From NCBI GenBank assembly GCA_010909165.1, contig MU008152.1, forward strand, positions 186,001 through 250,000: a DNA stretch of 64,000 bases, written 5' to 3'. Source of the DNA: Anthoceros angustus. Lineage: Eukaryota; Plantae; Anthocerotophyta. The notes beneath the pieces are model-generated. The model did no database searches and was not told the DNA's origin. It saw nothing but the letters and a program-made list of their open reading frames with translations. Position 1 is the stretch's first letter; every line of letters starts with the position of its first letter. Positions 4,979 through 52,250 of this stretch are shown piece after piece. The translations under genes were made by a program, and so were the position numbers.

Positions 4979-5861
<883 letters not shown>

Positions 5862-20853: not shown

Positions 20854-20934
20854 TAGACAAGCGCATACAATGCAGTATCATGAGTCCTACCCTACTTCAG
20901 GTTTTCGAAGACGGGGTTTCCGGTCTCAAACCAT

Positions 20935-22800: not shown

Positions 22801-23199
22801 ACATAGCATAGATACGCGGTACGTAAAAAACGTAAAATGTTCATAGAATCTTACGACGTTCTTTTTGGGGATATCTATTTTGTGAAATGATATAACGACC
22901 CATAAAATACGTAAATAAACTAGTCAAATTTAATAATCAATAATTGTACTTGGCATAACGAGGAAACCCTACTCCTACTCAAAATTCCAACCGACAATGA
23001 CACCAAGGTCGAAGACATCATTCTGTAAGCCGTAGCCAAATCGTCGGTAGTAGTCTGCTTAACAGGTTGATCCATGAATCTACTTGAATTTGCTCTAAAT
23101 CACTTGGCCTCAAGCTCCTGCACTACCTTGTCGTCAAGGCCAAATGTCTATTGCAGCACATCCAACCTCGACGGGAAGTTGAAGAGAGCAGCAACTGCC

Positions 23200-24121: not shown

Positions 24122-26450
24122 TGGTTGTTTCCGGTGGAGTTTGGCCGTGTTTCGCGAGGACGGCATTGCCGTTGACGCTTGATCACCTCGATCCTGGTTG
24201 CCCAGCGGCGGTGTCGAAATACGATTTGTTTCGAATCTTCTAGTCAGGTGCTTGGATCGACTGCTGGTTGCATGTTGGACTGAGGTTGATGTACTCTAGG
24301 GATTGAGCACTGGAGCTTACGGTGGCTTGACACTTCCTTGGAGAGAAGGCTGAATTGTCTGAAGGCCTATTGGCCGTTCTGGAGGCGATGGGCCGAATCT
24401 TGATCGGTGCTGTTGAATTAGGGCACAAGGTTGAGCTGCTCCTGTTTTTCAGAATTCTGACACTCGGCACACTTGGTGATGCATGTTGACGAGGGAGTGG
24501 GGGAATCTGCCTACCAGTTGAGATCGAGAGTGGTGCCTCGGCATACGACTGTCGCCGACGGAGGAATTTTCACAGACGAGCGACAATTGTTGTGAAGCCT
24601 GGGTTGCAAGCTATTGAGGCATGTACAGAGTCTCGGAAAGCTCACTTCGTAATCAGAGGGATTATGCGCTCAATTGGTGATCGGTTGGTCTCCATTCTCT
24701 GCTATTTTGCAAGAAGAAGAGGCAGCTAGGGGATCGCTAAGAGTCTAGTGGATCAAACGACATGGCCGAGCCGGTCATCGGCATCGAGGCGAGAAAAGTT
24801 CTCGCGCACTGCATACTCTTTGTGATTTCAAGCTTTACTTCAATTTTCTAACCAGCCGGGTCAAGTTCAAACATGGTGCAGCCTTTACAAATCGGTATAT
24901 GTTTGAGCAACTTCCGGGATACATGGCTGATAAAGCTTTGGATCTGTATGAGGCTCATTGTGAGAGATTGTTGAGTAGCACGCTTGCACCTAATCCGCCT
25001 TTCGCAAGCTTTGCGGTGGCGTATAGCTTTGCATGCTTCGCATTACACATCGGGTAATTGCCAATTACAATCAAGAGCATATAGATAAGCATGGTTGTTT
25101 AGTGAGTGATCGTGATGAATAAGCGAATGCGCTTATTCACAATTAGGGTTAGAAGAAGTGACAGTCGAATCGCGCACTCACCACATGGCGGAACAAGATG
25201 AGTAGTCATGATGTGGATCTGCATGCGCGGGAGCTTGGACCTGAAGATAAAAGCGCAGGAGAGCAAGGCAGTAAGTGGTTGTTAGAGTCTTCTTTGTGCA
25301 AGCAGCTGGTTATGGTAGCCACAATGAATCACTTCAACTTTTGAGACAATCTGAGTTTGCTGCTATGCTTGAGTGAACACTTGAAAGTGATCACTGGCAT
25401 TGCTTGCTGTGATGATGAACTGCCAACCCCAAACGAGACTCAGCTGAGAATCGCATTACAGAGACTCGTGTTGTGATCCGATCCTTTGTTTTGTTTCGAC
25501 CTACTTTTACTCTAACAACCACCTCGAGAGGGAGGCTAATTACGTGGTTTGTTTCCGGTGGAGTTTGTGTTTCATGTTTTATTGCCGGTTGACGCTGATC
25601 ACCTCGATCCTGCTGCCCAGGTCGAAATACGATTTGTTTCGAATCTTCTAGTCGTGCTTGGATCGACCCGGTTGCATGTTGGATCGAGGTTGATGTACTC
25701 TAGGGATTGAGCAATCGGAGCTTACGGCTTGACACTTCCTTGGAGAGAAGGCTGAATTGTCCAAGTTGGCCGCTTCCGAGGCGATGGGCGAATCTTGATC
25801 GGCTGGAATTAGCACAAGGTTGAGCCGCCTCTGCTTTTCGACACTCGACAGGCACACTTGGTGATGCATGTTGACGAGGGAGTGGGGGAATCTGCCTACC
25901 AGTTGAGATCGAGAGTGGTGCCTCGGCATACGACTGTCGCCGACGGAGGAATTTTCACAGACGAGCGACAATTGTTGTGAAGCCTGGGTTGCAAGCTATT
26001 GAGGCAAGGTACAGAGTCTGCAGGAAAGCTCACTTCTTCAGAATCTGTAGAGGGATTATGCGCTTCTGACTTGGTGACTGTCGGTTGGTCTCCATTCTCT
26101 GCTATTTTGCAAGAAGAAGAGGCAGTTGTGGACGACTGCGAAGAGTCTAGTGGATCAAACGACATGGCCGAGCCAGGGTCATCGGCATCGAGGGCAGAAA
26201 AGTTCTCGGGCAGACCTGGTACTCAGACTCTTTGTGATTTCAAGCTTTACTTCAATTTTCTAACCAGCCGGGTCAAGTTCAAACATGGTGCAGCCTTTAC
26301 AAATCGGTATATGTTTGAGCAACTTCCGGGATACATGGCTGATAAAGCTTTGGATCTGTATGAGGCTCATTGTGAGAGATTGTTGAGTAGCACGCTTGCA
26401 CCTAATCCTTTCTGAAGCTTTGCGGTGGTGTGGTGCACTTGCATGTTTCA
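23604..26450. repeat. ~1.44 kb tandem duplication (LTR end, leader, gag start) with scattered small indels
   Basis: TTACACATCGGGTAATTGCC at 23604 and 25043; the copies stay collinear to the gag N-terminus. Confidence 0.85.
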
Positions 26451-27244
26451 GCTGTCGCACATCGTCGGTATTGCTGGGACTATTTCTCCTACTACGGAAC
26501 CACCTACGGTGATTACCATGACGCCTCAAGAGAGGGCTGTGGCTACTGTGGGGATTGCTGAAGTTATGGAGGTGCCTGCATGTGTTAATCCTGTTGAGGA
26601 GTTCTTCATCATCTTGGAGAAAGCTTTTCCATTCAAGACACCTGAGAAGATAGCAGAGCTTGCTGCCTTCACTCGGAAGAAAGGAGAGACGGTTCCTGAT
26701 GAAGGCGTTACGGGAAGGGACAGGAATGCTTACGGATCAGGAGGCTGCACAGAAGTTTCTTAGTGCTTTGGAGACGAAGCCATTGTTCCAGTTTCAGTTG
26801 TTTACATCTTTAGTGGATAAATACGGGGACCAATATATGCTTGATCAAGTCTTCCAGGAAGCAGAACGGAAGAAACTGGCATTCTTAGCGTATGCTTATA
26901 AACATACTAAGTCTTATGCACATTACCAACATATGTTTGCTAGCAAGAGTGTTGTGCCTGCAGTTGGTACATCTAGCATAACTCATGTGTTGAAGCCTAA
27001 GCCTGCCAAGGCAGTTTCCACAGTCACTTTTTCACCCATCTGTAACCGCTGTGGGAGTACTGAGCATCTCTCGCCAGCGTGCAAGTGCTCCGTTGAGGCA
27101 CTTTATTGCACACATTGCCACAAGACGGGACATGTAGTTATCGTTTGTTTTCAGAAACATCTTGAACGTCGTTATCAAAAGCATGGAGGTGGAGAAGCCG
27201 AGGTTGCCACTTCCACCGCCAGCAGTGCACGGCCGCCTTCGTGA
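26164..27244 (+). pseudogene. Gypsy gag, frameshifted, with two CCHC zinc knuckles
   Basis: MAEPG...EKFSG...; FPFKTPEKIAELAAFTRKKGET; CNRCGSTEHLSPAC and CTHCHKTGHVVIVC both fit CX2CX4HX4C. Confidence 0.8.
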
Positions 27245-30200
27245 CTGCTAGTACGGAAGCAGCTCCCACTAAGAGCAAGCTTCGACGTGAGAAGGAGAAA
27301 CGCAAAATTGCGGCTGGTACTGAGAAGATGTCAGCACTTGAGACTGCCATGACGGCTCTCACTACTCAGATGAGTGTGTTGATGACAAGTTTGGCCTAAG
27401 GGCGCTTGAGCTAATATCCGCTCAGACGGTGAGGAAGAAGACTATGGAAGTCCTGGTGTGTGTAAGAGGGAAGATGCCGAGGCATCCGAGGTTGTCATCA
27501 GAGCGTAGCACACAAGCGGACAACGGTGTTGCCTGCCGCCACACGAATGCAGTGCCGTAGCGCGGATGCCACAATCTTTCGTTCCTTTGCCGCTAGGGAC
27601 AGCTGCTTCATTGAGAGGCGATCACCGCCACTTACAAACGAGCGAGGAACATAGCTCGCCAGGTGAGATGTTACACTTGGCTTCAACTGGGCGGAAGGGA
27701 GACCTTGTTCAAAAGCTGATTCACGCTCCATCATTCACATTGGATGAGTTGGGGGTGGGATTGACTCAGGTTCATTCCATGCTTCAAGACGTGTTGGCCC
27801 CACGGCTGGCTCTAGAGAAGTCGAGTCATGATGCTGTGATGCAGGCTAATGTGTTATCTTGTCAACCTCCAGAATCAACATGGGTTGACCAATTGACATC
27901 GGCCCAAGGGCTAATGGCCTCACAGTTGGCAAACATGTCAAAGGGGCATCCGATGGTACCTTTACCAATCAAGCTGATGTATGGTTAATCACACATTAGT
28001 GGATAATCGTGAAGGCCATGTCACTGTCAATGGAGTCGCTCCTAGAGTCGCTTCATAGACACAGGGCCCAACTCATCATAGGGCAAACATTGGTCGCTAG
28101 ATCAGCTCATGGGCTCGCTCTCAAGAGCTCAACCCGAATATTCAGATCGCAACTGTGGGGCCAGCAGAGGAGAAACAATTTATCCCGTAGTTGTTGCTTT
28201 TACGACCGGGTTCTCGCCGATGCCGCCACCATGGAGTACATTGTCTCGCTTCAGCCCACCACCATGACATTCTCGGGCGAGTTCATGTTTCTCCCGGTAT
28301 AGATAACTGGACAATAAAGCTTTATCTACCGACCGGCAGTGGAGGGCGCCCGCTGGCCTACATTCCTTGATCTTCATCACCGCACTGCTGATGCCCATAT
28401 GTTGATGACGGTGAGGCACGTTTCTGGATCGCGGTTTGCCTAAGGATGACAACCGGGTATCCTGGCTCTTTGAAGTGGAAGGCGAAGTGATCTCAAATGC
28501 TGTGGTCGCCGATGAAGCACTGAATGCCAGCTTTTCAGCTACAACCTGAGGTTTTGGAGCCTGATGCAACTTGGATGGATGCAGCTCGGGCTCATGTCAT
28601 TTTTGCCATGGAACAATTTCACAAGGGAGCAGGTGCTGACGATAGCACACTGCCGATTGTAGTTATGCATTCGGCATTGGAGCCACTTCACCAGCAAACA
28701 ATTACGTGGACTACCCCTTGTGATGGATGTGTGTTGGTGGAGCTTTTTGCAGGCATCTGTTCTGGATTGGAGGTAGCATTACGGCTACTTTATCAAAAGC
28801 ATGGAGGTGGAGAAGCCGAGGTTGTCACTTCCACTGCAGCCAGTGCTGCTGCGTCTTGAGACTCTAGCAGGCGGCTCCCACTAAGAGCAAGCCGGTGAGA
28901 AGGAGAACGCATAAAGGTGCGGTGGTCTTGAGAAGATGTCGACGCAGGGGCCATGTCGGCTCTCACTACTCGGATGAGTGTGTTGGCGCAAGTTTGGCGC
29001 TAAGCCGGTAGGCGATTGAGCTAATATCCTGTTCGGGACGGTGAGGAAGAAGACTGATCACACTGGTGTGTATGCGATGCTGAAGATGCCGAGGCATCCG
29101 AGGGTTCGTGGCCGTACACAGCGGACAACGGTGTTGCCCAAGCCGACTACAGTCTGCGTGGATGCCACAATCTTTCGTTCCTTTGCCGCAGGGGCTCATT
29201 GAGAGGCGATCACGCCACTTACAAATGAGCTGGAGGAACATAGCTCGAGCCCACGGAGATGTTACACTTGGCTTCAACCGTGGCGGAAGGAGACCTTGTT
29301 CAAAAATGATTCACGCTCCATTATTCACTTTGGATGAGCGGGGTGGGATTGACTCGAGTTCATTCCATGCTTCAAGACGTGTTGGCCCCACGGCTCTAGA
29401 GAAGTCAGTCATGATGTGATGCGGGCTAATGTGTTATCTTGTCAACCTCGTAATCAACATGGGTTGACCAATTGACATCGGCCCAAGGGCTAATGGCCTC
29501 GCGATTAACAAACATGTCAGGCATCCGATGGTACACCTACCAATCGGTTGCGGATCTTTGATTAATCACACATTAGTGGATAATCGTGAAGGCCATGTCG
29601 CTCAATGGAGTCGCTCCTAGAGTTACATTGGCAGGGGCCCAACACTCATCATAGGGCAAACATTGGTCGCTAGATGCAGCTCATGGGCTCGCTCTCAAGA
29701 GCTCAACTTTGGAATATCGCACACGGCGGGGCCGTTGAGCCGGTCTGAGGAGAAACAATTTATCCGTAGTTGTTGCTTCGGACCGGGTTACGCGATCTTG
29801 TCACCATGAGGTACATTGTCTCGTTCGCCACCATGACATTACGCCTCGGGCGAGTTCATGTTTCCTCCCGGGGTGGGCATAGATAAGCTGGCCAGAACGG
29901 GCTTTCTATCGGCGACCGGCAATGTGGAGGCGCCGCTGGCCTACATTCCTTGGATCTTCATCACCGCACTGGCATATCGGTTGATGACGGTGAGGCACGT
30001 TTCTGGATCGCGGTTTGCCTAAGGATGACAACCGTATCCGCTCTTTGAAGAGGAAGGCGGCACTCTCAAATCTGGTCGTGGGAAGCACCAATGCCCACAT
30101 TAACGAGGTTTTGAAGCTGCAACTTGGATGGATGCTCGGGCTCATGTCATTTTGCCATGGAACAATTTGGGAGTGCGGTCAGCGATAACTGCACTTGGGT

Positions 30201-30328
30201 TGTAGTTATGCATTCGGCATTGGAGCCACTTCACCAGCAAACAATTACGTGGACTACCCTTGTGATGGATGTGTGTTGGTGGAGCTTTTTGCAGGCATCT
30301 GTTCTGGGTTGGAGGTAGCATTACGGCT
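27172..30328. repeat. ~1.6 kb tandem duplication (gag end, protease, DNMT motif I)
   Basis: TTATCAAAAGCATGGAGGTGGAGAAGCCGAGG at 27172 and 28790; both copies end at GAGGTAGCATTACGGCT. Confidence 0.85.
27960..28330 (+). pseudogene. Retroviral-type aspartic protease relic
   Basis: TTC ATA GAC ACA GGG = FIDTG (DTG at 28058-28066); consensus of the two copies DTGAQ(P)LIIG; downstream EFMF...IDNWT. Confidence 0.7.
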
Positions 30329-32007
30329 TGGGCTGCCTATCAAAAAGTATATCTATCGTGATTGCCCTCATGCGGGCGATAGCCATCTTCCGCTACAACA
30401 GCAAGAATAATTTCCATCACTTGTCTCAGCGGCTGTGATGCTTTCACCGCTTTGCCTCAAGACATTTTGCTGGTTCAGCCTTGTCACATTCGCCAATTAG
30501 CACATGTGGACCTGGTAGTGGCCGGCTGGGAATGTCAGGGTTTTTCTAGAGCTGGTGGAGGAGCTGGTTTGCCACCTGTGAACCGGATCATGCACTTCAT
30601 TGGTTCAAGTGATGAGATGGATTCAGAATGCATATCCCAGGGCTCTTTATGTGTTCGAAAATACTCCAGCTCATTTTGACCGCGTTCAAGAGATATCGCT
30701 ATCGTGCGCCTTGTACTGGGCCTTTTGTTATGGACGCACGTTGGCGCTATGCTCATCGCTTGAGGAGTTATTGGACCAATTGGGCTCCTACGAAGGTTTC
30801 AACCGCGGCCTTGACATACACACGGCGAGATCCTCGCCTGGGCCAGGATGTGCTTGACCCCAAGCATGTCCCGCGCTGCAGGTGGTCTTGAGCGAGCTCC
30901 TTGGTTCCCTTCCAATCACGTGGGTGAGCCGCGGCCGACGCTGCTCACACCGGTTAGTTTTTCCGCATCCCATGCGATAGGGGAATGTGATCCGATCCAC
31001 AAGGCTGTTTGGTAGTAATGTATGCTAGCGGATAGGTAGAATAGAAGAAATGAATTATCAAGTGAATAAACATGAAAAACAAAAGGTATTTATAGTACAA
31101 CGTATTTAACCTAAATTGGTAGAGATATTTAACCCGAGATGGTTACTCATTTAACACTCCCACTTAACCTCGACGGGCTAAAGTAGAAAGCTAATTGAAA
31201 CTTATCCAGTAAACCCTAGATGACACGACGCTTCGGATTCCTGCTCCTCGGAGTAAGCCCCAACAGGATGGACGGCTTCGTTCCATGGTTCGCGCCCGCC
31301 ATTGTGCTGAAATCGCCTCCTCGCCTTCCTCATCGCACCATCATCATACGGCTTGGGCTGCCTATCAAAAAGTATATCTCTTGTATGTGATTGCCACATT
31401 GTGCGGCGCGCAGCCATCTTCCGCTCCTAGCAGTTAAATTTTCCATCACTCTTGTCTCGAATGCTTGCCGAGGATGCTTTCACCGCTTTGCCTCAAGACA
31501 TTTTCTTGGTTCACCTTGTCATTCGCCAATTAGCACATGTGGACTCGTGGGACATTTGGGAATGTCGAGTTTTCTAGGTGGTGGAAGCTGGTTTTAACAC
31601 CAGGCTGGTATTTACTTCATTGGTTCAAGTGATGAGATGGATTCAGAATGCATATCCCAGGGCTCTTTATGTGTTCGAAAATACTCCAGCTCATTTTGAC
31701 CAGCGATGTTCAAGTGATATCGCTATCGTGCCTTGGGCCTCCTTTTGTTATGGACGGTGCACAAGTTGGCAGCTATGCTCATCGTTTGAGGAGTTATTGG
31801 ACCAATTGGGCTCCTACAACAAGCAGCCTTGCGACACGGCGAGATCCTCGCCGATTGGCCAGGATGTGCTTGACCCCAAGCATGTCCCGCGGCCAGTGTG
31901 TGGCCCGGAGCGAGCTCCTTGGTTCCCTTCCAATCACGTGGGTGAGCCGCGTCGTACGTTGCCTACACTGGTTAGTTTTTCTGCATCCTATGCGTATAGG
32001 GGGAATG
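30195..32007 (+). pseudogene. DNMT3-like C5 cytosine methyltransferase, N-terminal part (motifs I-VIII), two overlapping copies
   Basis: VLVELFAGICSGLEVALRLGLPIKKYIY (motif I), VDLVVAGWECQGFSRAG (IV), VQVMRWIQNAYPRALYVFENT (VI), FVMDGAQVGSYAHRLRSYWTNWAP (VIII; compare DNMT3 AAHRARYFWGN). Motif I is also present at 28731-28766. Confidence 0.85.
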
Positions 32008-32390
32008 TGATCCGATCCACAAAGCATCGGTTGCTTGGTAGTAATGTATGCTAGCGGATAGGTAGAATAGAAGAAATGAATTATCAAGTGAATAAACATG
32101 AAAAACAAAAGGTATTTATAGTACAACGTATTTAACCTAAATTGGTAGAGATATTTAACCCGAGATGGTTACTCATTTAACACTCCCACTTAACCTCGAC
32201 GGGCTAAAGTAGAAAGCTAATTGAAACTTATCCAGTAAACCCTAGATGACACGACGCCCTTTGATTCCTCGCCCCTCGAGTAAGCCCCCGCCCAACAGGA
32301 TGGGCGGCTTGCTCCATGGTTCGCTACATGCATTGCGCTGAAATCGCTCTCCTCGCCTTCCTCATCGCACCATCAGTCATACAGCTTGTC
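30327..32390. repeat. ~1.02 kb tandem duplication (DNMT body, Copia 3' LTR, RNase H tail)
   Basis: CGGCTTGGGCTGCCTATCAAAAAGTATATC at ~30324 and ~31349; both copies carry the same LTR junction GGGAATG|TGATCC. Confidence 0.85.
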
Positions 32391-33003
32391 CTCAAGATGG
32401 TCAGGTCTGTGAGCATGGGGCTATCCAGCCAGAAGCGACCGAAGGGAGGCAAGACTCGAGGCCAGGAAGAAGGATCACAAGGCTCGAACAACTCCACAGC
32501 AACAAGGAAGACAACAACACAAGACAAAGGCGCTTATTAAATCTAAGAAGGGCGGTGCACGGCAGGGAGATTGGAGAAATTGCTGGAAGAAGCACAAGCT
32601 CGCACAACCCAGCTGAAAGAACAGGCCGAAGCAGGCGTGGAAATGAGAGAGGACGACAGGGAGCTAACGGCGGATGAGTGGGATCTGGGCGCACCAGTTT
32701 AATACATGCTTACCCAAAGATGGAGGCGTGACTCTAGAGGTAACACTGTCGACTTATTCTTAAGTTTCCATGTGCTAGGCTTGGATAGACGTGGGGCTTC
32801 ATCCTCTAAACATGTGGAAAATGGACAAATTGGTCTAACTTTGCTTGGCTCCAGCTGAAGCCATCTGAGTATGGGGGTGACTGACAAGCTAAAGTGCATG
32901 TCTCACGCGCTTGTGTGTAGGTATTATCATAAGAGGGAAACATGAGGCAAGACCACTAGGGATGTTGGAGGTACGCTAGGACTGCCACTCATGTAAGCCT
33001 AAG

Positions 33004-36000
33004 TTATGCAATAAAGTACTGTGAGAAATCCACAAGGCCCAGGCCTTCTACGTGTGCCTCATGCTTGTGTTTGGGCAAGGGTTTTGTGAGAATGTCAGCA
33101 ACATTGGAGTCTGTGTGTATATAGGTAGGCAGAACAATACCTCTGGATTTCACATCTCTAACATAATGATGCTGAATCTCGATGTGCTTGGTACGGGCGT
33201 GGAAGCGAGGGCGTTCAACAAGAGCAAGAGCAGACTGATTGTCGCAAAAAAGGATGGTAGGTTCTGGCTGTTCTGCGTGTGCTGAAGCCAGGAAAGCTCT
33301 CTCCCACTCCACCTCTTTGGCCGCATCAGTCAAGCACTTATATTCCGCCTCTGTGCTAGATAAAGCTATACTTGGTTGTTTTTTACAGCTCCAATTAACA
33401 GCAGCAGAGGACAGAAGAAAGGCATAAGTCGAAAGACTCTTGCAAGAATCGCCATCAGAGGCCCAGTCAGCATCAGCAAAACCATGCAAGGTAGGATGTG
33501 AGCCTCCTCGCTTGTAGCATAAGCCCAAATAGTGAGTACCTTTAAGGTAACGAAATACACGTTTAACCGCTGTCCAGTGATTTCTCCCAGGACACTCCAA
33601 GAATTGGGAAGAAGTATTCACGGCAAAGGTGATGTCTGGACGTGTCCAATTACTCACAAAAAGAAGGCTTCCCACAGCATGTCTGTAAGGAACATCCTGC
33701 ATATCGGCAATGTCCATGGCAGAGGTAGGGCTGTCCAGTTTTGAAAGTCGCACACCAGTTGCTCCAGGTGTGGCAGCAGGGTGAGCTGAATCCATGTTGA
33801 AGCGTTGCAGAATTTCAGAGATATATTTGTGTTGATGTATAATAATCATGCCCTTCTCTCTCACTCGCAGCACTTGAATCCCAAGGCAAAACTTCAGCTC
33901 ACCAACATCAGTCATCTCGAATTCATTGCGTAACATGGTTTGAACTTTGGCTAACAATTGTTTGTCGTTGGCTGCAAATATAGCATCGTCGACATACACA
34001 GCCAGCAGCACATAAGAGGAGCCATCATCATAGATGTAAACTGAGGGGTCAGCAGGACTCTGGCGAAAGCCAAGTGCACGCAGGCAAGTGTCTAGTCTAG
34101 CATTCCAGCGTTCTGCTGATTGTTTCAAACCATAAATGCACCTGATTAACTGGCAGACCCAATCCGGATGTGCAGGGTCCTCGTAGCCCTCGGGCTGCTC
34201 CATGTACAACTCTTCCTCCAAAACACCATGTAAGAATGCAGTTTTGACGTCCATTTGTTCAAGCTCCAGATCATGTTCAGCTGCTAAAGCAAGAATGAGA
34301 CGGATAGACTGGGATCTGACTACTGGAGAGAAGGTCTCCTGGAAGTCGAGGCCTGGAATTTGGGTGAACCCCCTAGCACACAAGCGAGCCTTATATCTAG
34401 CAATCTCCCCCTTAGAGTTAAGCTTGTGTTTAAAGACCCACTTACACGTAATGGGTCTACGGCCTTCAGGACGGGGAACCAACTTCCAGGTGCCATTCTG
34501 AATTAAACTATTGTATTCATCATGCACAGCATATTTCCATTTGTCCTGGTCTGGGCCTGAAAAGGCTTCCTTGAGTGTAACAGGTTTAGGAGGAATGACA
34601 GGCAGGGAGACAGAATGGATAGTGGGAGCAGATCACCACGGCTATCAATAGAAGTATATCCATTCGGAAGGCGGACACGTGTGGATCGACGAACAGGCTG
34701 ATGTGGATCAACTGCTGGGACAGGTAATGGCTCTCCTTCACCCGTAGAATCAGAATTTTGGGAAGAATGATCTATATCTGTGTGATCGGAATCTGTATCT
34801 GACTGATGATCTGGATGTGGAACAGGATCTGCAGCAGGTACGTCTACTTGTATGTCACCAGCTGGAGGTTCAGGATCAGGGACTGCTAATGGAATGGGGA
34901 TGGTTGGGCGGAGGTGTACCATAACAGCCGTGTGGTGGCAAGGAATAGCCGACAAGATTCCACTGGCCATCGGTAGTCAAATGTTCCTCTGTGAACATCA
35001 AAGGGCCTTCGTGTCGTTCAACCAGTATGTTGTCCCCTGTGACTGGTGGCTCCAATGTCTCTAGGAAAGTAACACTCCTTGCTACAGTTGGCTGTAAAGT
35101 ATCTGCATCAATAAGTTTATAGCCTTTGGCAATTTCGCTGTAGCCAACAAATACTAACCCCTTTGAGCGATTGTCGAGTTTACGCCTCTTCTCAACAGGT
35201 ATGTATGCAAAGGCTTTCGAGCCAAAAACGCGAAGATGAAGAATGCTTGGTTTGCGCTTCCAAAATCTCTCGAAAGGTGTACTATCTGGAACAGACTGTG
35301 ACGGAAGTCTGTTGAGTATATAGGTGGCTGTCACCACTGCTTCTGCCCAATATGGGGAAGGTAATCTTGACCACAAGAGCATTGATCTCGTCATGCCCAT
35401 TAATGTTTGATTCTTTCTCTCGGCAACCCCATTTTGCTGCTGCGTATATGGAACAATGAGCTGATGAATAATCCCTTGGCTGGTCAGGAACTCCGTGAAG
35501 GCATGACTGACAAATTCGCCACCATTGTCAGTCCTGAAGAGCTTGAGTAAACAACCGGTTTGACGCTGCACCATGGTCAACCAATCCTTGAAGATAGGAA
35601 ATGTATCACTCTTATGATGCATAGGGTATGTCCACGTATACCGGCTATAGTCGTCAGTTAACGTCAGATAATAGGATGCGCCTCCTAATGATTGAGTTTG
35701 TAGTCTGCCAGAGATGTCTGAGTGCACCAAGTCGAGGACTGATGTTGTCCTGTGTGCAGGTGCTCGTGGAAAAGGAGTCTCCCGTTGTTTAGCAAGAGTG
35801 CAAACTTCACAAATAGGCAACTCCTTGAAGCAACGTGGGAGAGGCTCCCGATAGCAATCCTGCTTAGAGGTATCAATCAATTTAGTTCTATTAGCATGGC
35901 CCAGGCGTGCATGCCACAGCCTGGCCTGCTGGACAGCTGTAAGGCTGCCAACTGTAGTAGAACATGCTTGCTGTCGACGGAGACAGAAAATATCTAGACG

Positions 36001-41700: not shown

Positions 41701-43250
41701 ATGTAATCACCGCATCATACAACTTGTCCGCTCCACGCTTGGTTTTGTGCGGCAAGCGAATCGACACCTCCTTTACATGTTGCAAGCAATACATCCGGAC
41801 CATTGACATATCATCCGCGAATGAAATACCACGATTCTAAATACCTCGACGTTGTGATGCCTCGAACCGCATGATGACGTTTTCAAACTCAAGGCGATGA
41901 ACGCGTGTCATACTCTCTCGAGTTAGCATCCACCCAACCCTCTTGGCAAGTCCGCAACATAGCATACATCGGGTTCCACAAGCCATCCTCACGATGTTCC
42001 CACATATTATGCCTACCTTCTGGATCTCCGTGTCATCTCGAATGTCTTTAACTTGTCGGGACTTGCGGTCTCCAACAACCGCCGTTGCTCATCCTCCATT
42101 ATTTTCCATGCTTTGGCCTTCATAACGTGTTCCTTGAAATTGTCGGGAGTGCACTCCACTCAAGACAAGCATTCGCCGCACAAAGGGCAAAGCACCACCG
42201 TTAGACAAGAACATCGCGGCAAGTGAAGCAAGCCCAAAGCCACCAAGCGCTCATACACATGAAATGATCTCAAATGCACCGTCGGTGTGGAACAGCGTGC
42301 AACTGACCATCGACCATAGTTTTGAACGCTGGCTGGAAGTTGCTGATCTGCTCGACAGTACTGTATTGAGGGTAGCGCTCCCTAACCTGCTCAAAGGTCT
42401 CACAGTTCAGGTTCTTTGCAAGTGTGACGTGGATGAGGTTCAATTTTTTGGCCTTCTCCAGCCACCCTTGCATTTGCCTCAAACTCATTTCTCCAGACAG
42501 AACCTTCATACATGCGTTGTCTTAAGGTTGTTGTTGCCCGCAGCAGAATGTTCGATACCCTGGAAACACTTCCACACTCTCACTGGCACATCCGCTTCTT
42601 TAACCTCAATGACCACAAGGTCTCTCACGTAGGTGTGTTCCGTGTCCTCCTCGTGGCCTTTGTCTGCTTTTTGCTAAGGGCTGCATCCACTGCTCCTGAA
42701 TCGCACATTCCCACTTCTCAAATATCTCGTCCACATACCTCCGGACTTCTTCATCAACTTTTGCCACACAAGAGTCCATGTTCTTGTCCACAAGCCCGTG
42801 ATACTGCACTTGGGGCCATGCTTTGTTGCATCCACTTTGGGATCCCCAGCGCCGCATACACATCCAGCCCGCCACGCCGCACTTCAAACCTTTCGATCTC
42901 CTAGATAGCAACTCACTTCTAATGTAACGACTCGGTCCATGAAAGTAAATGTCTTTCTTGCATCCGCGATCGTGTTGTGGTCCGAGCTACAATCCTCATC
43001 TCGTCCTCTGTGAGTCCAGCTAGGACATATGCATCCATCCACTTGTACTCTTCCTTCAAGGTGGGATGAGATGACGGACCTTGCCTCGAAAGAATGATTA
43101 CCCCCAAGACGAAAACTGTACACACCTTGGTCCACCTTCTCAACGCCGAAATTGCTTTTGTCAAGACACCGTGAAGGATCGACTATCACAACCATTGGAA
43201 GACACCACCACCCAGGATGTTTCATCTTTTGCATCAAAGCCTCCACCCAA
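38770..43250 (-). pseudogene. ParB-like domain fused to a beta-class amino (N6A/N4C) DNA methyltransferase, frameshifted
   Basis: LGGNHSFEAR...AGLTEDEMRIVA.DHN (43108-42960); KVGIICGNIVRM then YAMLLADLPRG (motif IV-like, 40391-40405; consensus of two copies); VVFHS..(W)HKTN; CPYQKPI.LLKKLIELY..EGEWVL..CASSG.MVAAIKCRR.VISIDVDP (motifs X-I-II, 40004-39860). Confidence 0.75.
39393..42512. repeat. ~1.56 kb tandem duplication of the amino-MTase region
   Basis: ATGCTTGTCAATCGGGTCCTCC at 39393 and 40951; the copies differ mostly by 1-3 nt indels. Confidence 0.9.
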
Positions 43251-46200
43251 GCGAGATCCGCTTCTCACCGCCTCACACAGCTTCCTCCGTGGTTTGCAAC
43301 ACTTGATTGGCAGCTTCAAAGTAGACTCCCAAACTCGTTTGATAGCAATACCGTCCCTTCTACGTCCCGCAGACCGCTCTTATTGCGAAGCCCGCCATCA
43401 TCGTAGCGACTGCTACCGTCCTTAGCTTTCTCCACAAACCCGGGCGGGTTCATCCTCCTCTTCTTCTTCGCTCTCCTCCACAATTGGCTTCCTTGTTTCC
43501 CTTTGATTTCTTGGCTTTCCCATTGTCATGTGCACCACCCCGAACTGCTTTGCCAACAAAAGCTCCTCCTCTTCCTTCCCTTGCGACTTCCCGACGATGG
43601 GGACTCGCTTGCACCCTTCTACGATCCAACACCCGCTAGACCTGTGAGCAATCACGGATGGGGAGAGAACCTCGAGATCGCCTTTCTTGCCGCCGCCAGC
43701 CTTCCTCTTCGTCTGCAGAGCCACCTTCGCATCCCGATCGCCTTCCGACTCGCAAAATACCATCCGGAAATGCCTCATTGTCCTCACGCCCCCGTGTCCT
43801 CGCCGCATCCGGGCTTCCTTCCCTTTGCCGCGGATGAGTTATGCGCATGGGGGTCACTAAGTCCGCCGGCTCCGCTCAAAACCCGGACGTCCGGCCGGTC
43901 GGGCACATCCGGGCATCACCAGCTCTGCAAGTGACACGAATGCGCCGGGCTCACCGCCATGACCTCTGCATTCTAAGCCAATCCCAAACATTTGCGTAAT
44001 CTTTATTCCTTGGATGCTTTCAAAGTGATTGGTTGTTTCAACCGTATGCACCGTGGGTTGTTTCCCAATATTTGCACCGTAGTAAGCATACCATCTTCTC
44101 CATTGCCGGGCTGCATCCTTGCAAATGCCCTTGTTGGTTGCTTCTCGATGGTAATTGCTTCGCGCGATGAACGGTGGGTTGCGCGCAGAGATGCATTTCA
44201 CTGCACGGTCCACATGCACCGCCACGCCATCGAGTATCCCGGCGGATGCACCCCGCCTGGCCATACCGGTGGCGACCAAGTCGACCGCTTTAGCTCCACT
44301 AACGGTTTGCCTCACTCCTTCTAAACAAATTTGGTGTATAACCTTGTGGAACACAATGTACCCATCATTGGCTCTCAACCGCAGCAGTTCCTCACGGACA
44401 CCTCCTACCGGCAAGACAGGTCAAAAGTCTTGATCGCAGATGAGTAGACGCGAACGACATTGGGGTCGTTTAAGCCGTGGTCTTTCGGTGCACAGGAAAA
44501 TTACGTACCCCTGGTCATTCTTCTCAACGAATCGTGAATGTAATCGCCCCGACATGAAGACTTTGAACTGGACCGTGGTGCACCCATAATGTACACATAC
44601 ACCAATTGGCCAGCAGGACGCGTACCCGTGTCTTGTCCGAGATGTCGAATCTGAGAGTGCTCCATAAACAACTTTCTCAACATATCGATTTCCGCCTTGT
44701 AAGGACTTTGAAACGATGCTGCTGGAGTTGATGTGGTGGGGCGGGGTCACCACCGCCGTGTTCTCGCATGCCGGGGTCGGTCTGGACTCGTGCTTCCATC
44801 CGGGCTCGCGAATCAACGGCCTTACGCCGCGTTTTTTGTCCGCCGCACTCCTTCTCCATCGAGCATTGTTCCGCTTCTTCTTTAGAGGGCCATCTGTACA
44901 AATTGAGCAAGCCGGTCAACGCTCAAGGGTCTATGAGCACCTAATCGGAATGCAATGGTGAATCAAGAGCAAGAAACAACCTCTCCACTGTCGACCCCGA
45001 TGTCCGGCAATGACACCAACTTCGTGATGTACCACCCCGCACCACACTCCTATGGTTCGCATGGACAACAATACTATGAGAATGTGCCTCTATACCCGCC
45101 AGATTTAATCCATTTTTGGCGCCAAATTCCTTCAAGAATAGACGATCGCATGATGGCTCATGGCAACTAGATCGCGACCATGTGGACTCGCATGAATCGA
45201 TACGGTCAAATTGCAAAGGTGGTGGGGCGGCATTTTGCCAAGTTTAGCCGGCCGTGGCTCAATCACAACAAGGAATACAAGATACTTCCACAATATTCTG
45301 GTTTTGCCAATAAAATCGCCGCCACTTGCATAACATCCGACGCCCCGATCATGGCAATCATTTGTGGCATTTAACGGTCTTCCCGCCATGAGTCAGAGCA
45401 AATCTCACATCCGTGTTTATCGACGTCATTGCGGTCCAAAGATCCGAGATATTTAGAAGTCACATCTTAGAAACCTCGACTCTATGTGTTCGACTCGAGC
45501 ACATTGCGACCATCATTGTTGGCTTGTCTCTGGTAGCACGCAATGGCTAACGACCTAAGCGTAGAGGAGGAGTTCTTTGATTTGGTAAACGACAGAATAG
45601 TTCCAGCTGATGCAGATCTCGGACATGTGTTTGAGTCCGAGATAGTGGACTTGGCGGCGGTGGCCTCGACAGACTTCCATGTCGACGACCTCGCACCGTG
45701 TCGATTCCATCTAGTAGACATTGCCGCTGCACCACCGAGTTGAACCCCGGACGTCCGGTGATGGCTTGCCCGCAGCACGGGAGGAACGTGAGTACATGGC
45801 CTTAGATGAAACGGACTGCGGGGTGATACATCGGACGTGGCCGATGGAGATTTGCTCTTGTTTGATCCTCGGATGGACACCAACGGGCCGCGGGATCAAG
45901 AAGAAATCGCGCCCATGTGGGACCGGGTGGCCGCGCCGGCCGCCATCCGGAGAGGCCTCGATATCCCACCGACGCAACTGGGCCCGACCCGCCTGCCTGT
46001 ACCCGGTTTGTTCAAGTCACCAGAGCGAAGAAATTGGCCAGATGCTCGATCCAAGTCCGCAAATGGGATTTCTCCGGCGCCCACTGGAGACAAGGTGGCG
46101 CCAACAACAAACCCATTTTGTGCGTCGCAGGAGTACTATCAACCTTGCGGCCACTGTGAACCACTCATGAGAACAGCACGGATTCTGAATCAGAGAGTAT

Positions 46201-46499
46201 TGCTGAGTCTCCGGATTGTGGTGAGATTGTGCATGAGATCGTGGATTTTGGATTGCAATATGCACTGGTGGGTCATGAAGGCACTAGTAGAGGAAGGACA
46301 CGGAGATCACATCTGGTACGCGACCCAATTGCACTGTTCGGAGATGTGAAATCACCTGACCACGGGTTACATTTGCCAGAAATGCTGCCTCCTGCTAATC
46401 CTAAGTCTAAAGGGCTGGAGTTGTATTCGTGGCGGTGTGTGTTCCACCAAGAACCGCAGCAAGAGTTGTCGGATCACGCTCGAAGCACCGTGAATCGGA

Positions 46500-47800
46500 C
46501 GGCCATGTGCGGACTCGAGAAGGCTGGCTGCGAAAAAGTGCTTAGGCCGGTGAAGGCAAACTCAAGTCGATCCGTGTGTCCTTTTTTCCATGACGCAAGG
46601 GAGCAGGAACAAGATTTACAAGACCTTATTGATATGGTGGAGGACGAGGAAACGGTGGTGGACGGATGGGTGAACAAGGTACCACATGGGAAGGTTCCGA
46701 TATGTGAGCATTCTCACGGTGTTCGTGATTGGAGCATCATGGTACGGAATGCTCAAACCCGAGTACAAAAGGGAACCAGTGTAGAGGCAAGGCTTGGAAG
46801 AATCCCAACTTCATATGGTCTACAAGTCGTGATGTGGATGGATACCTTTTCAAAGGAAATGTGGAGAGACTACCCAGAGAAGTATTCAATGCCTCGATAC
46901 ATTCACAAAGGAGGAGATTTTCATAGAGTATGCTGCAACAAAAGCTAGAACAATTACCACACATGTATGTTACAATATTTCGTAAGTGTGGATACGCCAC
47001 TTTCGGTCGGTGAAGATTCCACGATGCAACTGCTTTTCAATATGTCGTGAGAAACGAAGCGAAAATAAAAATGCGAACGATAGAGCAAGGTGAAGGCATC
47101 CATCTTAGATATGTGGTTAAACAACGGATGTCCGGTGATTGGCAGCTGTCTTTATGGGCAACCCAAAGCCCGTTTTAGGGTTTTGTACAAATATTTGCTC
47201 TTCCCGGTCCCAAGGAACGCTTTGCCTTGACCTGGACTTGTACTCATGGTGCGCCTGCCTTGTATGTGCGCATAACCGAGAGCTCCTTAATTACCACCGC
47301 GATCAACAATGTAAGGAGCGGGCGAAGATGGCGAAGCATCGCGTGTATGGCTCAACCGACCAAGTACATTGGAATGGCGATAGATGGTATGGATCAAAAA
47401 CCGAGTTGCCTCATTTCCGTAGAGTGCCCAAGGATGTCGACATCGCAGCCCTTGTCTCGCTCATGTGCTTGGGGTTTTGGTGTTTAGCAAATACATGCGG
47501 ACTTCGTACCTAAGCTTCCCCAATATTCTAATGATGATCCTAACGGGACAATAGTTGGTCCAAAGATGTTATTGGGAAGGCCACTTGCCTAAAATAAAAT
47601 TGTATAAGAATCAAGAGGTGTTGGCGTAAAGATGTTAGTGTCCAAGGGTATTTTCAAGAAGGTTAAAGTGGGCTTTTAATTGTTGGCTATACCCATGATC
47701 GATTGATCAAATGTTCTCCTGCTGAGCTGAGGCTTGCCTTGAGCGATACTCCATCGCAGAGAGCGATACTCCATCACCGAAGGAAGGAAGCCGACTTCAA
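46500..47800 (+). pseudogene. DDE-type transposase relic
   Basis: QPTKYIGMAIDGMDQ (47383-47397), then LPHFRRVPKD, and GIFKKVKVGF..VG.TH...DQMFS (~47647-47718), preceded by a Cys/His-rich region. Confidence 0.6.
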
Positions 47801-50800
47801 GAAATATCCGTGGCCACCGGTGGTCCCTCAGAATATCTGCCGCACAATCACGCTTTCAACATCGCTTTAAGATAACTCGAGAAGAGTTGCCTAGTCACAG
47901 TATGTTACGGTTGAGGTGCAAGCATTTTCCACCGCACCGGACCCCGATGGTGGTGTGCACTGCTATGGATGGAGTACGAGAGGGAGATTGTGGCAGCGTG
48001 AGCTGGTGCCATTGCATGTGAGGGCGAAAGGCAAAGGGCAAAAGGAACATGCAGACCGCCTCGCAGTGCCGGGAGTGGAGGACAATAGGCGCTTAAAACG
48101 TCGATGTTTTTAATGATCAACAACTCACAGGGAAGCTCGGGAGGAGCAACTAGCAATAGCGGTGTGGTAGCCTCGTGCTCTCCTCCACGGAAACCGATGG
48201 ACATGGTATAATAGAGGAGAGCAGCACCCACAACAACCAAGATCCAGATGAAGTGGTAGTAGATGCATTAGCAAGACGATATTCGGACAAGAGCGAGATT
48301 TACAGTGCACACAGATCATCGCTAGACGACAACGTCTCGCAAAGACAGAGGGTCTATTGCGTAGATTGAAGCAGCATGATGCTTACAGACAGCGGATGAC
48401 CCGAGGGCCGTCCTTCGGGCCGGGTAAGGTTGTGTTGACCATGATGGTGTTGAACTGATAGCACAAGTGCATTGGTGGCGATCAAAACCAAAATGCACTG
48501 GACGGAAGGTACTGGAAGAGTGGGTGCCATGCACCCCAACAAAGAAGCCGGAGGAAAGGGAGACGGAACCCTTTGAAGAGGCATGTGCAACCCATCAATC
48601 TAATGGAGACAACAATTATGGGTTATGATTTTGAGCTAACGAGGAACAGGACTTTGAGCAAAGACACAATGGAAATGTTGAAGAGAAAGATCTTTGAGCT
48701 TCGAGCGAGCCAAGTGAGGAATCGCTTTGCTTCCTCCGCTTGATACCGCAGAAGTGGTGACGAACGGATTGATTCCGGCGATCTCGACAATGTTGAATCT
48801 TGATGCATCCGTTGATTATTTGGTGGACTTGCTTGAAGGTGTGGACTCGTGAGGAGCCGATCGCAACCCACCTAGGATTCTAAATTTTGAGGTTGGCCAG
48901 ATAGAATCATGAAGTCTCGCATGCCGACTTAGCAAGGATGTAACCAAAGGTTTTTGTCCGGGTTGCACCGACGTGCGGGTCACGTTGATGCCGGACCGGA
49001 TGTCCAGGTTGTTTGTTGGTTCTCAATGTATGGAAGGCATGATTCTGCTCACCAGATAGCTTGTTTGGCGCTTGATGGGAACGGGGAACCCCGATCGGTT
49101 GAACGGGGAAACCCCGATCGTGGTTCGGGCTTCAAGGCTTGGATGCGAGGGAGCGGTGTGAAGGAGGTTGATTAAACCCCAAACCGGCGGTGTTCGCCCC
49201 TTACTCTCCTACTCCAATTACTTCCCATGTTCGCCCACCTTTACGGTTTATGCTTGAGTGTGGATGCTGTTGCCTCCGCAGCGCCGCTCACTGGAGGTGA
49301 GGCGTTGCGGGTAATAAATCCAGGGAAGGGGCTTGTTCGCGCGACGCGCGTTGGGTCGACAAGAAGACGACCGTGGTGCAAGGCACGCTTTTCCGCAATC
49401 CGTGAGTGCATGGGAGTTGCACACATGGCATGTTGCCTTTTCCTCCACTCGCTCGCCCCTGCACTGACCAGTTGGCCATCCTAGTTGCTATTGCAGCTGA
49501 ACCGATGCGGGGTTATGGCGAGGTGCCGAGCCCACTATCACCGCATGCAATCGAGGAACCGTGCGCGCCATCGTGCTTTTCGTGTGTTGGTGTTCGTGCG
49601 CAGAGGTTGCACCGTGAATAATGAGGACGAGGAGTGGTTGATACGCCCCCCCGTGATCAAGCGGACATCCAGCAAAGAGGGCCGGGAGGAGGTCCTCGAC
49701 GCAGTGCGGCGTGGCCGGCAAGAGGGAGGAATCCTCCTGCCTGAGGAAACCTCGCTGTGTGGCACCTGCCATCCCGAACGCCGCTTGGTTTCAAGGGGAG
49801 GTGGGATCCGAGTTCTTGCGCGAGCCTGAGGGGAGTGGACACCTCCTGAGAACCCCGAGATGAGGAACCGCGAGATATCTCTCGTGTCCCATGGCTGGGA
49901 GGAGCCGACGGCAAGAGGAGCCTTCGCAGCCAGCCCTACTCGCAGTTGAAGGCTGAAAATCGGAGCTTTCCTGTGAGGAGAAGGAGGTCAAGATGCGTGT
50001 GGTCTCGCGAGGCGGCGAGAGGGAGCTGGCCTTGTGATGGCGGGGCGCCGCCAAAGCATCGGCAAGTGGAAGGAGCTTCCGTGAAGACCGCGGTGATAAC
50101 GCCACATGTGCATGCGTTTTTCCTCCTCCGGATGCCTTTGTATGCGCGCCAGCTTGGTCTTGTGCATGATGAGTCAAAGTGCATTGGTGTATGCATCGTG
50201 TTCGTGACGGGAGGTGTACAACAGAGATTAGGATTTTGACAAGTTTTGGGTAGGCACATGAGACATTTTAAAGCTTTCCTTTGTTCACATAGGAACTTTC
50301 TTAGTTATGTGGGACTGAGTTGAGGGTGAGCTCAAGGAGCTCCATGGACGTTATGTTCACGCTGATTGTGTGTGTGTGAGGTTAGGCTTGGGATGTTTGG
50401 ATCACCATGCATTCGATACTTGTCTGTCTTCGTCCATTAGACGCTTGCTTATCGATGCATGCGAGATGCGGAACGCGCTTACCAAGTGGATAAGTAAGTC
50501 TTTCGAAGGCAAGAGGAGGGTCGTGCCGGACGTCCGGCCACGGCAGCTACCGGAAACGGATATTACTTGCTCCTCATGCTTTCTATTCCATACGATTCCG
50601 AAAAGTGTGGATATGTTGGTTTGAAATTACTAGGATATTTATACTGAAATTCGAGCCTGCCTTGGAACACGATTTTTCTAAATAGCATTGGCGGTATGTT
50701 TGCCTAACCGATGTATAAAATAGCCTTCATCATTATTGTTGGTCAAGGGCGGGTTTGGAACGAGGCATATATTGATTACTAACGGTACAAATGTGTCGAT

Positions 50801-51327
50801 TAAAATAAATTGCCCGATGTGGCTGGATTTTAAAAAACAAATAAAAAGGCTTTTTCAACCGGTTCAATCCCAAGGAGCGAAGGTGGTCCATTGGCATGAG
50901 GAACCAAGAAAGGTGCTTTTCACAAAGGTGGGCCCATCAAGAGTGTGTTTGGGTCTTGTTTGGGTGCAAACCCTTAAAAGAGGGTTTGCTTTTCATTTTA
51001 GAGGTCAAGCTGGCTAAACGACTCGGGTCTCTAAAAAGTGGAGCGCCTCATTTACTTGTGAGAGACCTTGTTGGTGCACGTGGATTCTTCCTCGCGAGTA
51101 CTTGCATCAGACAAGGATCAAGAGAGATGCATCGTGCTCGATACTATGATCCGATCCACAAAGCATCACAAGCTTGCTTGGTAGTAATGTATGCCAAGCG
51201 ATAGGTAGAATAGAAGAAATGAATTATCAAGTGAATAAACATGAAAACAAAAGGTATTTATAGTACAACGATTTAACCTAAATTGGTAGAGATATTAACC
51301 CGAGATGGTTACTCATTTAATGTAATG

Positions 51328-51500
51328 GTCCAAGTTTGTTATTCAAATTACGTATACTCACCGTTGGGAGGAGCCGCCCATCGCAGTAGCGTGAGCGCAT
51401 CATGGGGTTTTCAACTCATGCCATCATATCATGTCGCTAGAGTTTTCGTTTTTCCGAACGTTGTAGGTCATTGCTGGGCGAAGCTATGGACTTGTTTGCT
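51328..51500 (+). pseudogene. DNMT3-like methyltransferase, C-terminal part (motifs IX-X)
   Basis: GPSLL...HRWEEP...RERIMGF (51390-51410) and ERCRSLLGEAMDLF (to ~51497); directly follows the Copia A LTR and TSD. Confidence 0.8.
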
Positions 51501-51829
51501 CACCGTTAGTGAGCATTTGTCTCATGTTTCAAGTCTTGGCTCCGACCGAAGTTTTGTGGCATGGCGCTATCAGGAGCCTTCCTAACCGCCATCCGTGATG
51601 CGTGACACTTCTGCCTTTTCCCTTGCCAAGATCTGTACTTTTCACCATGTACCGGGAGGGGGACATGCAAGATGGAAATCCAAGCTCGCTATGGGTCGAT
51701 GTCACGATGTCACGATCCTTTGTTCGCACAACTTCACCGATCGCCTCTTCTATTGAGACTCTTCCGAGTATGGGTCCGGGTTAGCTGACCAATGGGGACG
51801 CAACGAATGATACCCGGGTTGTTGGTTCG

Positions 51830-52250
51830 CATCACTGTGACCGCTTTTGCTTTTTCGATGAAAGAGCTTTGAACTCGCAATGTTATGCGCCGTGACATTC
51901 CTTTGATCTCTTCTGAGCCTATCTATCTAAGAGACGCAGATTGTACGCAAGTAAGTCCCTGTAATCGGGCTATTGTGGATGTCACTGCCAGAACCGAGAG
52001 GTATGCGGACTTTGACCACGTGGTCCCGGAGTATCAGGATAAGTCCGGACCCCGCTCCGGATCAAAACGGGATAAGTACGCCAAGCAAGGTAACTTAGAA
52101 GTTGAGCGTGAGTTAGACAGTATACGCCACGTGGATGGTACCGGTAGACGGGCATGCACTGTGCAGACCGTAGCATTGCCGGGCGTTATAAGGTGTATTC
52201 ACGCCCGCTGCATCGCTGCACAGAAGGCCGAGTAGGCGAAGCTGCAAGGC
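51830..52250 (+). pseudogene. Gypsy reverse transcriptase N-terminal relic following the DNMT domain
   Basis: AFAFSMKEL, IPLISSEPIY / KRRRL, RAIVD, QGN; heavily garbled and truncated. Confidence 0.5.

Follow-up and report, generated by a model that had tools for sequence, protein, structure and literature searches.

A dead Ty3/gypsy-type retrotransposon that very probably carries a DNMT3-type cytosine methyltransferase between protease and reverse transcriptase in Anthoceros angustus

Cytosine methylation is the main weapon of the host against transposons, and a paradox arises when a transposon itself supplies a de novo methyltransferase. Such elements were documented before only in dinoflagellates and one charophyte alga. 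A stretch of 64,000 nucleotides (nt) from Anthoceros angustus (contig MU008152.1, positions 186,001 to 250,000 of the forward strand; hereafter the window, with positions counted from its first letter) raises the question of whether a land plant has also harbored one. A first-pass annotation of the window had proposed a Ty3/gypsy copy with a C5 methyltransferase embedded in pol, after Gag and protease (PR) and before reverse transcriptase (RT), and this arrangement is borne out by profile and tblastn matches that are collinear with it. We conclude that the locus is very probably a dead, nested and rearranged Ty3/gypsy-type long terminal repeat (LTR) retrotransposon with a DNMT3-type cytosine-5 DNA methyltransferase between protease and RT, belonging to the KnitGypsy-Dnmt3 family. 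The annotation rightly pointed to earlier examples of methyltransferase-bearing retrotransposons (PMC5890265), but the element is not of a new kind, being of the same family as KnitGypsy-Dnmt3 of Klebsormidium nitens, of which the protein KFL_013780020 is a member.

The methyltransferase is the best preserved trace of this identity within the window. A 158-residue piece of the window, run with HMMER against 1.84 billion proteins, returned 25 relatives, and a follow-up search from one of them returned 33 more; 19 intact domains among them were made into a family profile. The window contains three partial copies of the domain and a separate C-terminus (Table 1), over which motifs I, IV, VI, VIII, IX and X are spread in the canonical, unpermuted order of C5 methyltransferases; every motif quoted in the annotation is present, on one strand and in order. 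Copy 2 gives five collinear matches to profile positions 8-263 that together reach about 140 bits, and matches in its span include 30264-30365 (profile positions 8-41, E 1.9e-9), 30437-30571 (positions 71-115, E 4.6e-14) and 30748-30876 (positions 184-227, E 2.7e-7). Copy 3, which is 92% identical to copy 2 in amino acids over 97 columns, is matched at 31711-31878 (positions 164-222, E 2.6e-11) and 31857-32000 (positions 216-263, E 3.1e-13). The C-terminus matches positions 286-296 and 305-319, which is not significant alone (E 1.4-1.7) yet is collinear with the rest. The profile matches nowhere else in the 64 kb in six frames on both strands, and the collinear matches within the locus are far beyond chance. 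Downstream of the target-recognition region and ahead of motif IX, the domain is interrupted by an AT-rich segment of 186 nt. Copies 2 and 3 also have the left part of this segment; the Marchantia and Closterium domains lack it and run on without a break at that point. A spliceosomal intron is an unlikely explanation of this segment, given the lack of an in-frame GT-AG by inspection, the TTGG flanks and the uninterrupted relatives.

On the + strand the domains follow one another as Gag, (protease), methyltransferase, RT and RNase H. A Gag/PR profile of seven relatives (from Closterium, Klebsormidium and Marchantia) matches 26587-26691 (E 5.5e-6) and 26699-27211 (E 2e-11), and Gag contains two C-x2-C-x4-H-x4-C knuckles, at 27041-27082 and 27107-27148, which the Pfam zf-CCHC model detects weakly (E 0.098). 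Since profiles from the same relatives match both, the capsid gene and the methyltransferase of the window belong to one retrotransposon family. Between them lies a putative protease site, with a DTG tripeptide at 28058-28066 that has a frameshift inside it and the peptide LIIGQTLVAR at 28072-28101, repeated at 29645-29674. Downstream of the methyltransferase, seven Closterium relatives match 51801-51977 with residues that follow their methyltransferase and precede their RT core (E 1e-4 to 9e-3 against a 1.6-kb target). The annotation ended the element at 52250, which is too early, because weak remnants of an RT core and of RNase H lie beyond that position. The RT/RNase H region yielded 14 tblastn matches at E<=0.01, compared with 0-1 in reversed or block-shuffled controls; we assign the putative RNase H remnant with moderate confidence, and weaker matches on the opposite strand occur at the same place. 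For integrase (INT), the only matches were at E 0.3-0.5 near 57.9-58.2 kb, and Pfam found none.

Relatives in other genomes retain the arrangement in a more readable form. For example, an element of Closterium NIES-68 (locus L001) encodes Gag(CCHC)-PR-DNMT-RT-RNaseH-INT in one frame with four stops and has 545-nt direct repeats that are 95% identical. The copy in Closterium NIES-54 (L008) has 353-nt repeats that are 99.4% identical and a 1231-codon frame that runs from Gag through the methyltransferase into RT, followed after a single TGA inside RT by 805 more codons, so that it holds one stop in 2,036 codons; some Closterium copies are thus young. The annotation had allowed that the methyltransferase might never be found in frame with protease and RT, and in the Closterium relatives it is in frame with both. 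In Klebsormidium nitens, KFL_013780020 contains zf-CCHC, protease and DNA_methylase, is followed by an RT-RNaseH-INT gene, and matches a Closterium relative at E 1e-47. In Marchantia polymorpha, MARPO_0020s0163 (GCA_003032435.1, KZ772692.1) lies on a 1.9-Mb nuclear scaffold and adjoins a fatty-acid desaturase gene; the element there (L006 7222-18921) spans 11.7 kb in the order Gag-PR-DNMT-RT-RNaseH-INT, with frame breaks and an internal tandem duplication of 1,001 nt (L006 13269-15269). A protein fragment from Spirogloea is also a family member. Nucleotide similarity was not found between the window and the loci of the relatives that were compared (Closterium, Marchantia and L010, a metagenome locus).

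Three of these elements, two from Closterium and one from Marchantia (L001 9441-17082, L009 3985-12112 and L006 7222-18921), have terminal repeats of the form A...B-A-B, in which a stretch B of 106-123 nt directly precedes the 3' repeat and is found again directly behind it, and they encode a DDE integrase. The same split repeats, with a remark on 'DIRS-like repeats', were described for the Klebsormidium element (PMC5890265). Programmed read-through was considered as a family feature, given an in-frame TGA between methyltransferase and RT in Klebsormidium (L007 4894-4896) and NIES-68 (L001 13436-13438), and was rejected, as the NIES-54 copy lacks a TGA there and its only stop lies inside RT. 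To judge from the sequence of the Marchantia locus, and independently of the window, the family has reached embryophytes. The survival into an embryophyte that the annotation inferred was already readable from the public Marchantia polymorpha gene model and its locus. In the literature we found no paper that reports such elements from any land plant, Marchantia included, or from Closterium, and a 2025 paper only restates that retrotransposons 'in streptophytes and dinoflagellates' contain embedded DNMT3 members.

To which branch of the C5 methyltransferases does the domain belong? Against the PDB, the family profile matched DNMT3A at 1.4e-27 and DNMT3B at 8e-25, followed by DRM (5e-12), M.HhaI (7e-8) and DNMT2 (about 2e-5), with DNMT1 not listed; the DRM2 match is confined to profile positions 8-137, the half whose order survives the permutation. 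For P0110 (residues 1-324), the intact relative closest to the window, AlphaFold gave a model with a pLDDT of 95.5, whose top 50 structural matches in Foldseek are all DNMT3A/B/C (TM 0.69/0.77). These comparisons, which were run on relatives 40-50% identical to the window pieces, indicate that the methyltransferase is of DNMT3 type, as the annotation had proposed from motif VIII and the close spacing of motifs IX and X, both of which fit. Pfam detected no PWWP or ADD companion domain in the polyproteins of the relatives, and in some relatives the integrase bears a PHD finger.

In an unrooted maximum-likelihood tree, in which every break in the window rows was bridged by gaps or X, the window domain is sister not to Marchantia but to a group with a second architecture, with support 96/92. 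Members of that group encode RT-RNaseH-DNMT-integrase-PHD finger (P0108, P0110, P0111, P0113, P0014, P0017, P0020 and L010 247-2273) and were found only in metagenome and EukProt sequences; a metagenome scan with the target-recognition peptide of the window recovered a single locus, L010, of the RNaseH-DNMT-INT type. The same methyltransferase clade is found at two positions in pol, either between PR and RT (Closterium, Klebsormidium, Marchantia and the window) or between RNase H and a PHD-finger integrase.

The catalytic loop of these enzymes has a feature of its own. To our knowledge, Pro-Cys is near-universal in motif IV of C5 methyltransferases. Motif IV reads G-W-E-C-Q in both window copies (30524 and 31500s), and W-E-C, with Glu in place of Pro, is present in 26 of the 32 family proteins, with W-P-C in only four (Marchantia and three more) and F-P-C in Klebsormidium. 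Proteins that are only 35-45% identical all conserve motif I, which binds S-adenosylmethionine (SAM), along with the Glu of motif VI, the Arg-x-Arg of motif VIII and the catalytic Cys, so that the motif IV Glu is likely a selected variant and not decay. The conservation of the catalytic sites argues for a selected enzymatic role, and the family-wide Glu leaves the exact chemistry or substrate open. Both the W-E-C-Q motif and the two pol positions of the clade may be new features; together with the presence of the family in land plants, the Glu-Cys loop and the two positions appear to be undescribed.

In intact members, the methyltransferase would be translated as part of Gag-Pol, as in the 1231-codon frame of NIES-54. 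Following the proposal of de Mendoza et al., it would travel with the replication complex and methylate the new cDNA of the element or its integration site, and such self-methylation could either confer a host-like methylation state on the copy or dampen the expression of the element itself. We regard this mechanism as quite conceivable in intact members, though short of probable. Its only experimental support is the CG methylation performed by an unrelated enzyme, borne by a DIRS element of Symbiodinium, which methylates CG de novo in yeast (PMC5890265). More tentatively still, a gypsy lineage with a DNMT3-type enzyme may have persisted from charophytes to bryophytes (Marchantia and the genome of the window), working with a Glu-Cys loop and with its domain moved within pol.

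The window copy itself makes no enzyme, because it is disrupted by insertions of 19 kb and 4.4 kb, the 186-nt insert, three block-wise tandem duplications and many frame breaks; a continuous Gag-Pol frame through the methyltransferase is absent, with stops and frame changes throughout. That the copy is broken had been noted in the annotation, and the frame breaks, duplications and insertions are all apparent. Three consecutive stretches are each doubled in tandem at 82-90% identity (A/A', B/B' and C/C'; Table 1). A 470-nt LTR-like repeat heads both A and A' and has a third, inverted copy at 58181-58690; it is a candidate LTR whose status is not proven, because it has no direct 3' partner in the window, and a search for a primer-binding site for tRNA-Met gave nothing above chance. 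The nested block of 19 kb that splits motifs IX and X from the target-recognition region has a 174-nt duplication at its borders (the sequence of 32008-32180 and 30998-31154 is found again at 51147-51320 with 94% identity), which is unlike a simple target-site duplication. The block includes a near-intact Copia whose open reading frame (ORF) has a best match of 47% identity in a sequence-archive contig and best named matches of about 30% to angiosperm and liverwort proteins, and Pfam found nothing in ten further ORFs of the 38-50 kb part (five in 38770-43250 and five in 43.4-49.8 kb). In RT, residues 263-304 of the Closterium protein P0098 map to 51843-51977 and residues 304-353 to 56358-56498; because the residues run on across the gap, the 4.4 kb between 51977 and 56358 are read as an insertion. 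No tandem repeat or Pfam domain was found in this block (51978-56357).

The tandem copies differ in patches: identical runs, the longest of 229 nt, alternate with stretches at 55-70% identity, and there are many indels of 1-8 nt. Positions in CG and CHG contexts differ 2-3 times more often than those in CHH, and transitions equal transversions even at CG (98:106), which is not the signature of natural deamination. These patchy, CG/CHG-biased duplicates reflect either assembly noise at methylated cytosines or an unusual duplication or conversion process. Block-wise tandem duplications of 0.5-1.6 kb were also seen in unrelated elements of the window, at 39393-42521 (a transposon) and 16966-17913.

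Several results weigh against this identification and against activity of the enzyme. A PF00145 search, which the annotation had suggested as a check, gave a divided answer: among ten single window pieces the best score was 12.1 bits (E 0.13) against a cut-off of 22, since the frame breaks leave only short pieces, whereas the family profile matches collinearly down to E 4.6e-14 and 13 of the 19 intact relatives pass PF00145. The protease and RT start called in the annotation fared unevenly: the DTG tripeptide is present, protease homology by profile or tblastn was no better than in shuffled controls, and the RT start at 51801-51977 is matched weakly when the whole window is the target (E 0.016). 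Pfam gave no match on pieces from 56.3-58.3 kb, and family HMMs for the RT N-terminus and for RT-RH-INT were not significant on stop-delimited pieces, leaving the RT and RNase H remnants weak. No 3' terminal repeat was found within the 64-kb window, so that the ends of the element are undefined. In addition, most family members keep the catalytic Cys and lack the canonical Pro of motif IV, and the Klebsormidium domain produced no methylation in yeast, a result its authors considered inconclusive, as human DNMT3B failed in the same assay (PMC5890265).

The missing statistical support for a protease between Gag and methyltransferase would also be expected if the methyltransferase were a host DNMT3-type pseudogene, or a separate insertion, among unrelated gypsy fragments; the heavily nested repeat region and an insert that could be read as an intron point the same way. 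We nevertheless consider this explanation highly improbable. Block B was duplicated as one unit containing the Gag tail, the DTG site and motif I, the Gag is homologous specifically to that of the methyltransferase-carrying family, the domain falls inside the retrotransposon-borne clade, there are relatives with all domains in one frame, the companion domains of host DNMT3 enzymes, such as PWWP and ADD, were not seen, and the insert has TTGG flanks in place of an in-frame GT-AG. A different concern, compatible with a dead member of the KnitGypsy-Dnmt3 family, is that much of the apparent decay, that is, the frame breaks every 100-150 nt and the duplications A/A', B/B' and C/C', is an artefact of assembly or base calling in a heavily methylated repeat and that the real element is more intact. 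The patchy divergence of the tandem copies with its small indels, the excess of differences at CG and CHG, the even ratio of transitions to transversions and the same block duplication in the unrelated transposon would all be consistent with such an artefact. However, the nested Copia keeps intact frames of 829 and 507 codons, a 1.45-kb repeat pair in the window differs at only 0.8%, arguing against noise throughout the assembly, misalignment in indel-rich patches likewise pulls the transition:transversion ratio toward 1, and the Marchantia locus, from a separate assembly, also has an internal 1-kb tandem duplication. We therefore hold an artefact of this scope to be possible but doubtful. Finally, the domain of intact members might not write 5-methylcytosine in DNA at all, having instead a shifted substrate (RNA, single-stranded DNA or an RNA:DNA hybrid) or serving as a non-catalytic binder of DNA or SAM. 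The prevalence of W-E-C and the negative yeast assay are in line with this, and de Mendoza et al. raise RNA methylation for the enzyme borne by a long interspersed nuclear element (LINE) (PMC5890265). Such a role is unlikely, though, as the catalytic Cys, the ENV Glu, the Arg-x-Arg and a DNMT3-like target-recognition stretch are invariant or nearly so and the predicted model superposes on DNA-bound DNMT3A/3B; moreover, the tested Klebsormidium protein has the canonical F-P-C, so that its negative result says nothing about W-E-C, and the failure of human DNMT3B weakens it further.

Table 1. Positions of the element's domains, methyltransferase motifs, duplicated blocks and insertions in the window
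Feature	Positions	Strand	Basis
Tandem block A: LTR-like 470-nt repeat (about 23610-24080), leader, duplicate Gag start	23604-25019	+	90% identical to 25043-26428
Tandem block A': candidate 5' terminal repeat (about 25046-25510), leader, Gag N-terminus	25043-26428	+	Repeat alignment
Gag, ATG at 26164, two frame changes	26164-27241	+	Gag/PR profile and knuckles
Tandem block B: Gag tail, protease remnant, methyltransferase start	27172-28786	+	82% identical to 28790-30328
Putative aspartic protease active site	27990-28101	+	Position and DTG tripeptide only
Methyltransferase copy 1, motif I alone	28722-28784	+	Family profile positions 8-28, E 0.0017
Tandem block B': second Gag tail, protease, motif I	28790-30328	+	Self-alignment
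Methyltransferase copy 2, motifs I, IV, VI, VIII and target-recognition region	30264-30982	+	At least 4 frame changes
Tandem block C/C'	30322-31355 / 31347-32388	+	86% DNA identity
Methyltransferase copy 3, before motif IV to target-recognition region	31434-32000	+	Profile positions 58-263
Motif I ELFAGICSG	28740 and 30282	+	Sequence match
Motif IV GWECQGFS	30524	+	Sequence match
Motif VI FENT	about 30660 and 31680	+	Sequence match/alignment
Motif VIII AHRLRSYWTN	30751 and 31777	+	Sequence match
Motif IX ERIMGF	51393-51410	+	Sequence match
Motif X LLGEAMD	51471-51491	+	Sequence match
Nested block of 19 kb separating target-recognition region from motifs IX and X	32181-51146	.	Copia and other repeats
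Near-intact Copia: 829-codon gag-protease-integrase frame, 507-codon RT frame	33004-37365	-	Copia domains in nested block
AT-rich insert (31% GC, 186 nt) inside methyltransferase, target-recognition region to motif IX	51182-51367	+	TTGG flanks
Methyltransferase C-terminus: WEEPP at 51365, motifs IX and X	51365-51500	+	One frameshift, one TAG stop
RT N-terminal remnant (..DIPLISSEP..)	51801-51977	+	tblastn with Closterium relatives
Insertion of 4.4 kb in RT, GC 60%, purine-rich + strand	51978-56357	.	P0098 mapping and composition
RT core remnant, ends YIDNVLAA instead of YxDD	56358-56779	+	Collinear P0098, P0097, P0100, P0102, P0107 matches
Putative RNase H remnant	57360-57528	+	P0017, L008 ORF2, P0098, P0100, P0103, P0108, P0111 RNase H domains, best E 8.6e-5

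Elsewhere in the window, a direct repeat pair of 1.45 kb (58970-60416 / 62551-64000) is 99.2% identical with the copies 2.1 kb apart, and may be a segmental duplication or the repeats of another element. A partial copy of this repeat region at 20162-22902 (82-92% identical) starts in or beside the last exon of an adenosine 5'-phosphosulfate (APS) reductase gene, whose exons, with a thioredoxin-type C-terminus, lie at 19076-20221 and look plant-like by eye. The other host genes are a 3'-5' exonuclease-like exon (1825-2376), a SNORD36 box C/D snoRNA (5376-5455; Rfam 49.8 bits) and a beta-propeller gene on the - strand (12511-14402), pyrroloquinoline quinone (PQQ)-like by eye.

The copy in the window is a fossil and contributes presence and architecture only. 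The significance of the family lies in its distribution: it is widespread in the charophyte sister lineage of land plants (Closterium and Spirogloea) and occurs in at least one land plant (Marchantia) and probably in a second bryophyte. Marchantia and Closterium are tractable systems in which one can ask whether the elements methylate themselves, hide from host silencing or become tamed, and whether activity is changed by the Glu that replaces Pro in the catalytic loop. If the enzyme is active, land plants would have a transposon-encoded de novo methyltransferase with unusual active-site chemistry.

Among the closest known systems is KnitGypsy-Dnmt3, first described in Klebsormidium nitens (de Mendoza et al. 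2018, Nat Commun 9:1341; PMC5890265). Like the copy in the window, it is a gypsy-type LTR element whose Gag-Pol includes an unpermuted DNMT3-like domain placed between protease and RT. It has a CCHC knuckle in Gag, its protein KFL_013780020 is among the members of the family profile that detects the window copy, and its split A...B-A-B repeats are shared by the Closterium and Marchantia relatives. The window differs in host, in having a dead copy with a 186-nt insert in the domain and undefined ends, in the W-E-C of motif IV where K. nitens has F-P-C, and in a domain that is about 40% identical to aligned family members and falls on another branch of the tree. The Marchantia locus and the Closterium elements (NIES-53/54/65/67/68) have the domain order of the window with homologous Gag and methyltransferase. 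The Closterium copies share W-E-C-Q with the window, whereas the Marchantia copy, which is also frame-broken and internally duplicated in tandem, has W-P-C and groups with Spirogloea and not with the window. The methyltransferases closest to that of the window are those of the RT-RNaseH-DNMT-INT-PHD elements (P0110 is 50% identical, and L010 reaches 61% in the target-recognition region), which share W-E-C-Q and an F-x-G-x-C variant of motif I with it but carry the domain between RNase H and a PHD-ended integrase, unlike the window copy, where it lies downstream of Gag/PR and upstream of RT. SymbioDIRS-Dnmt3 and SymbioLINE-Dnmt of Symbiodinium are likewise retrotransposon-borne cytosine methyltransferases, but are set apart by their description as elements of other classes (DIRS with a tyrosine recombinase, and LINE), and they were considered independent acquisitions by the authors (PMC5890265). 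Among host enzymes, DNMT3A/3B/3C match the family in fold and motif order, in similarity that continues past motif VIII to the beginning of the target-recognition region, and in the close spacing of motifs IX and X; they differ in that identity is about 20% and the family lacks PWWP and ADD and has Glu-Cys for Pro-Cys. Plant DRM2, in contrast, is circularly permuted and aligns with the family over only part of the domain.

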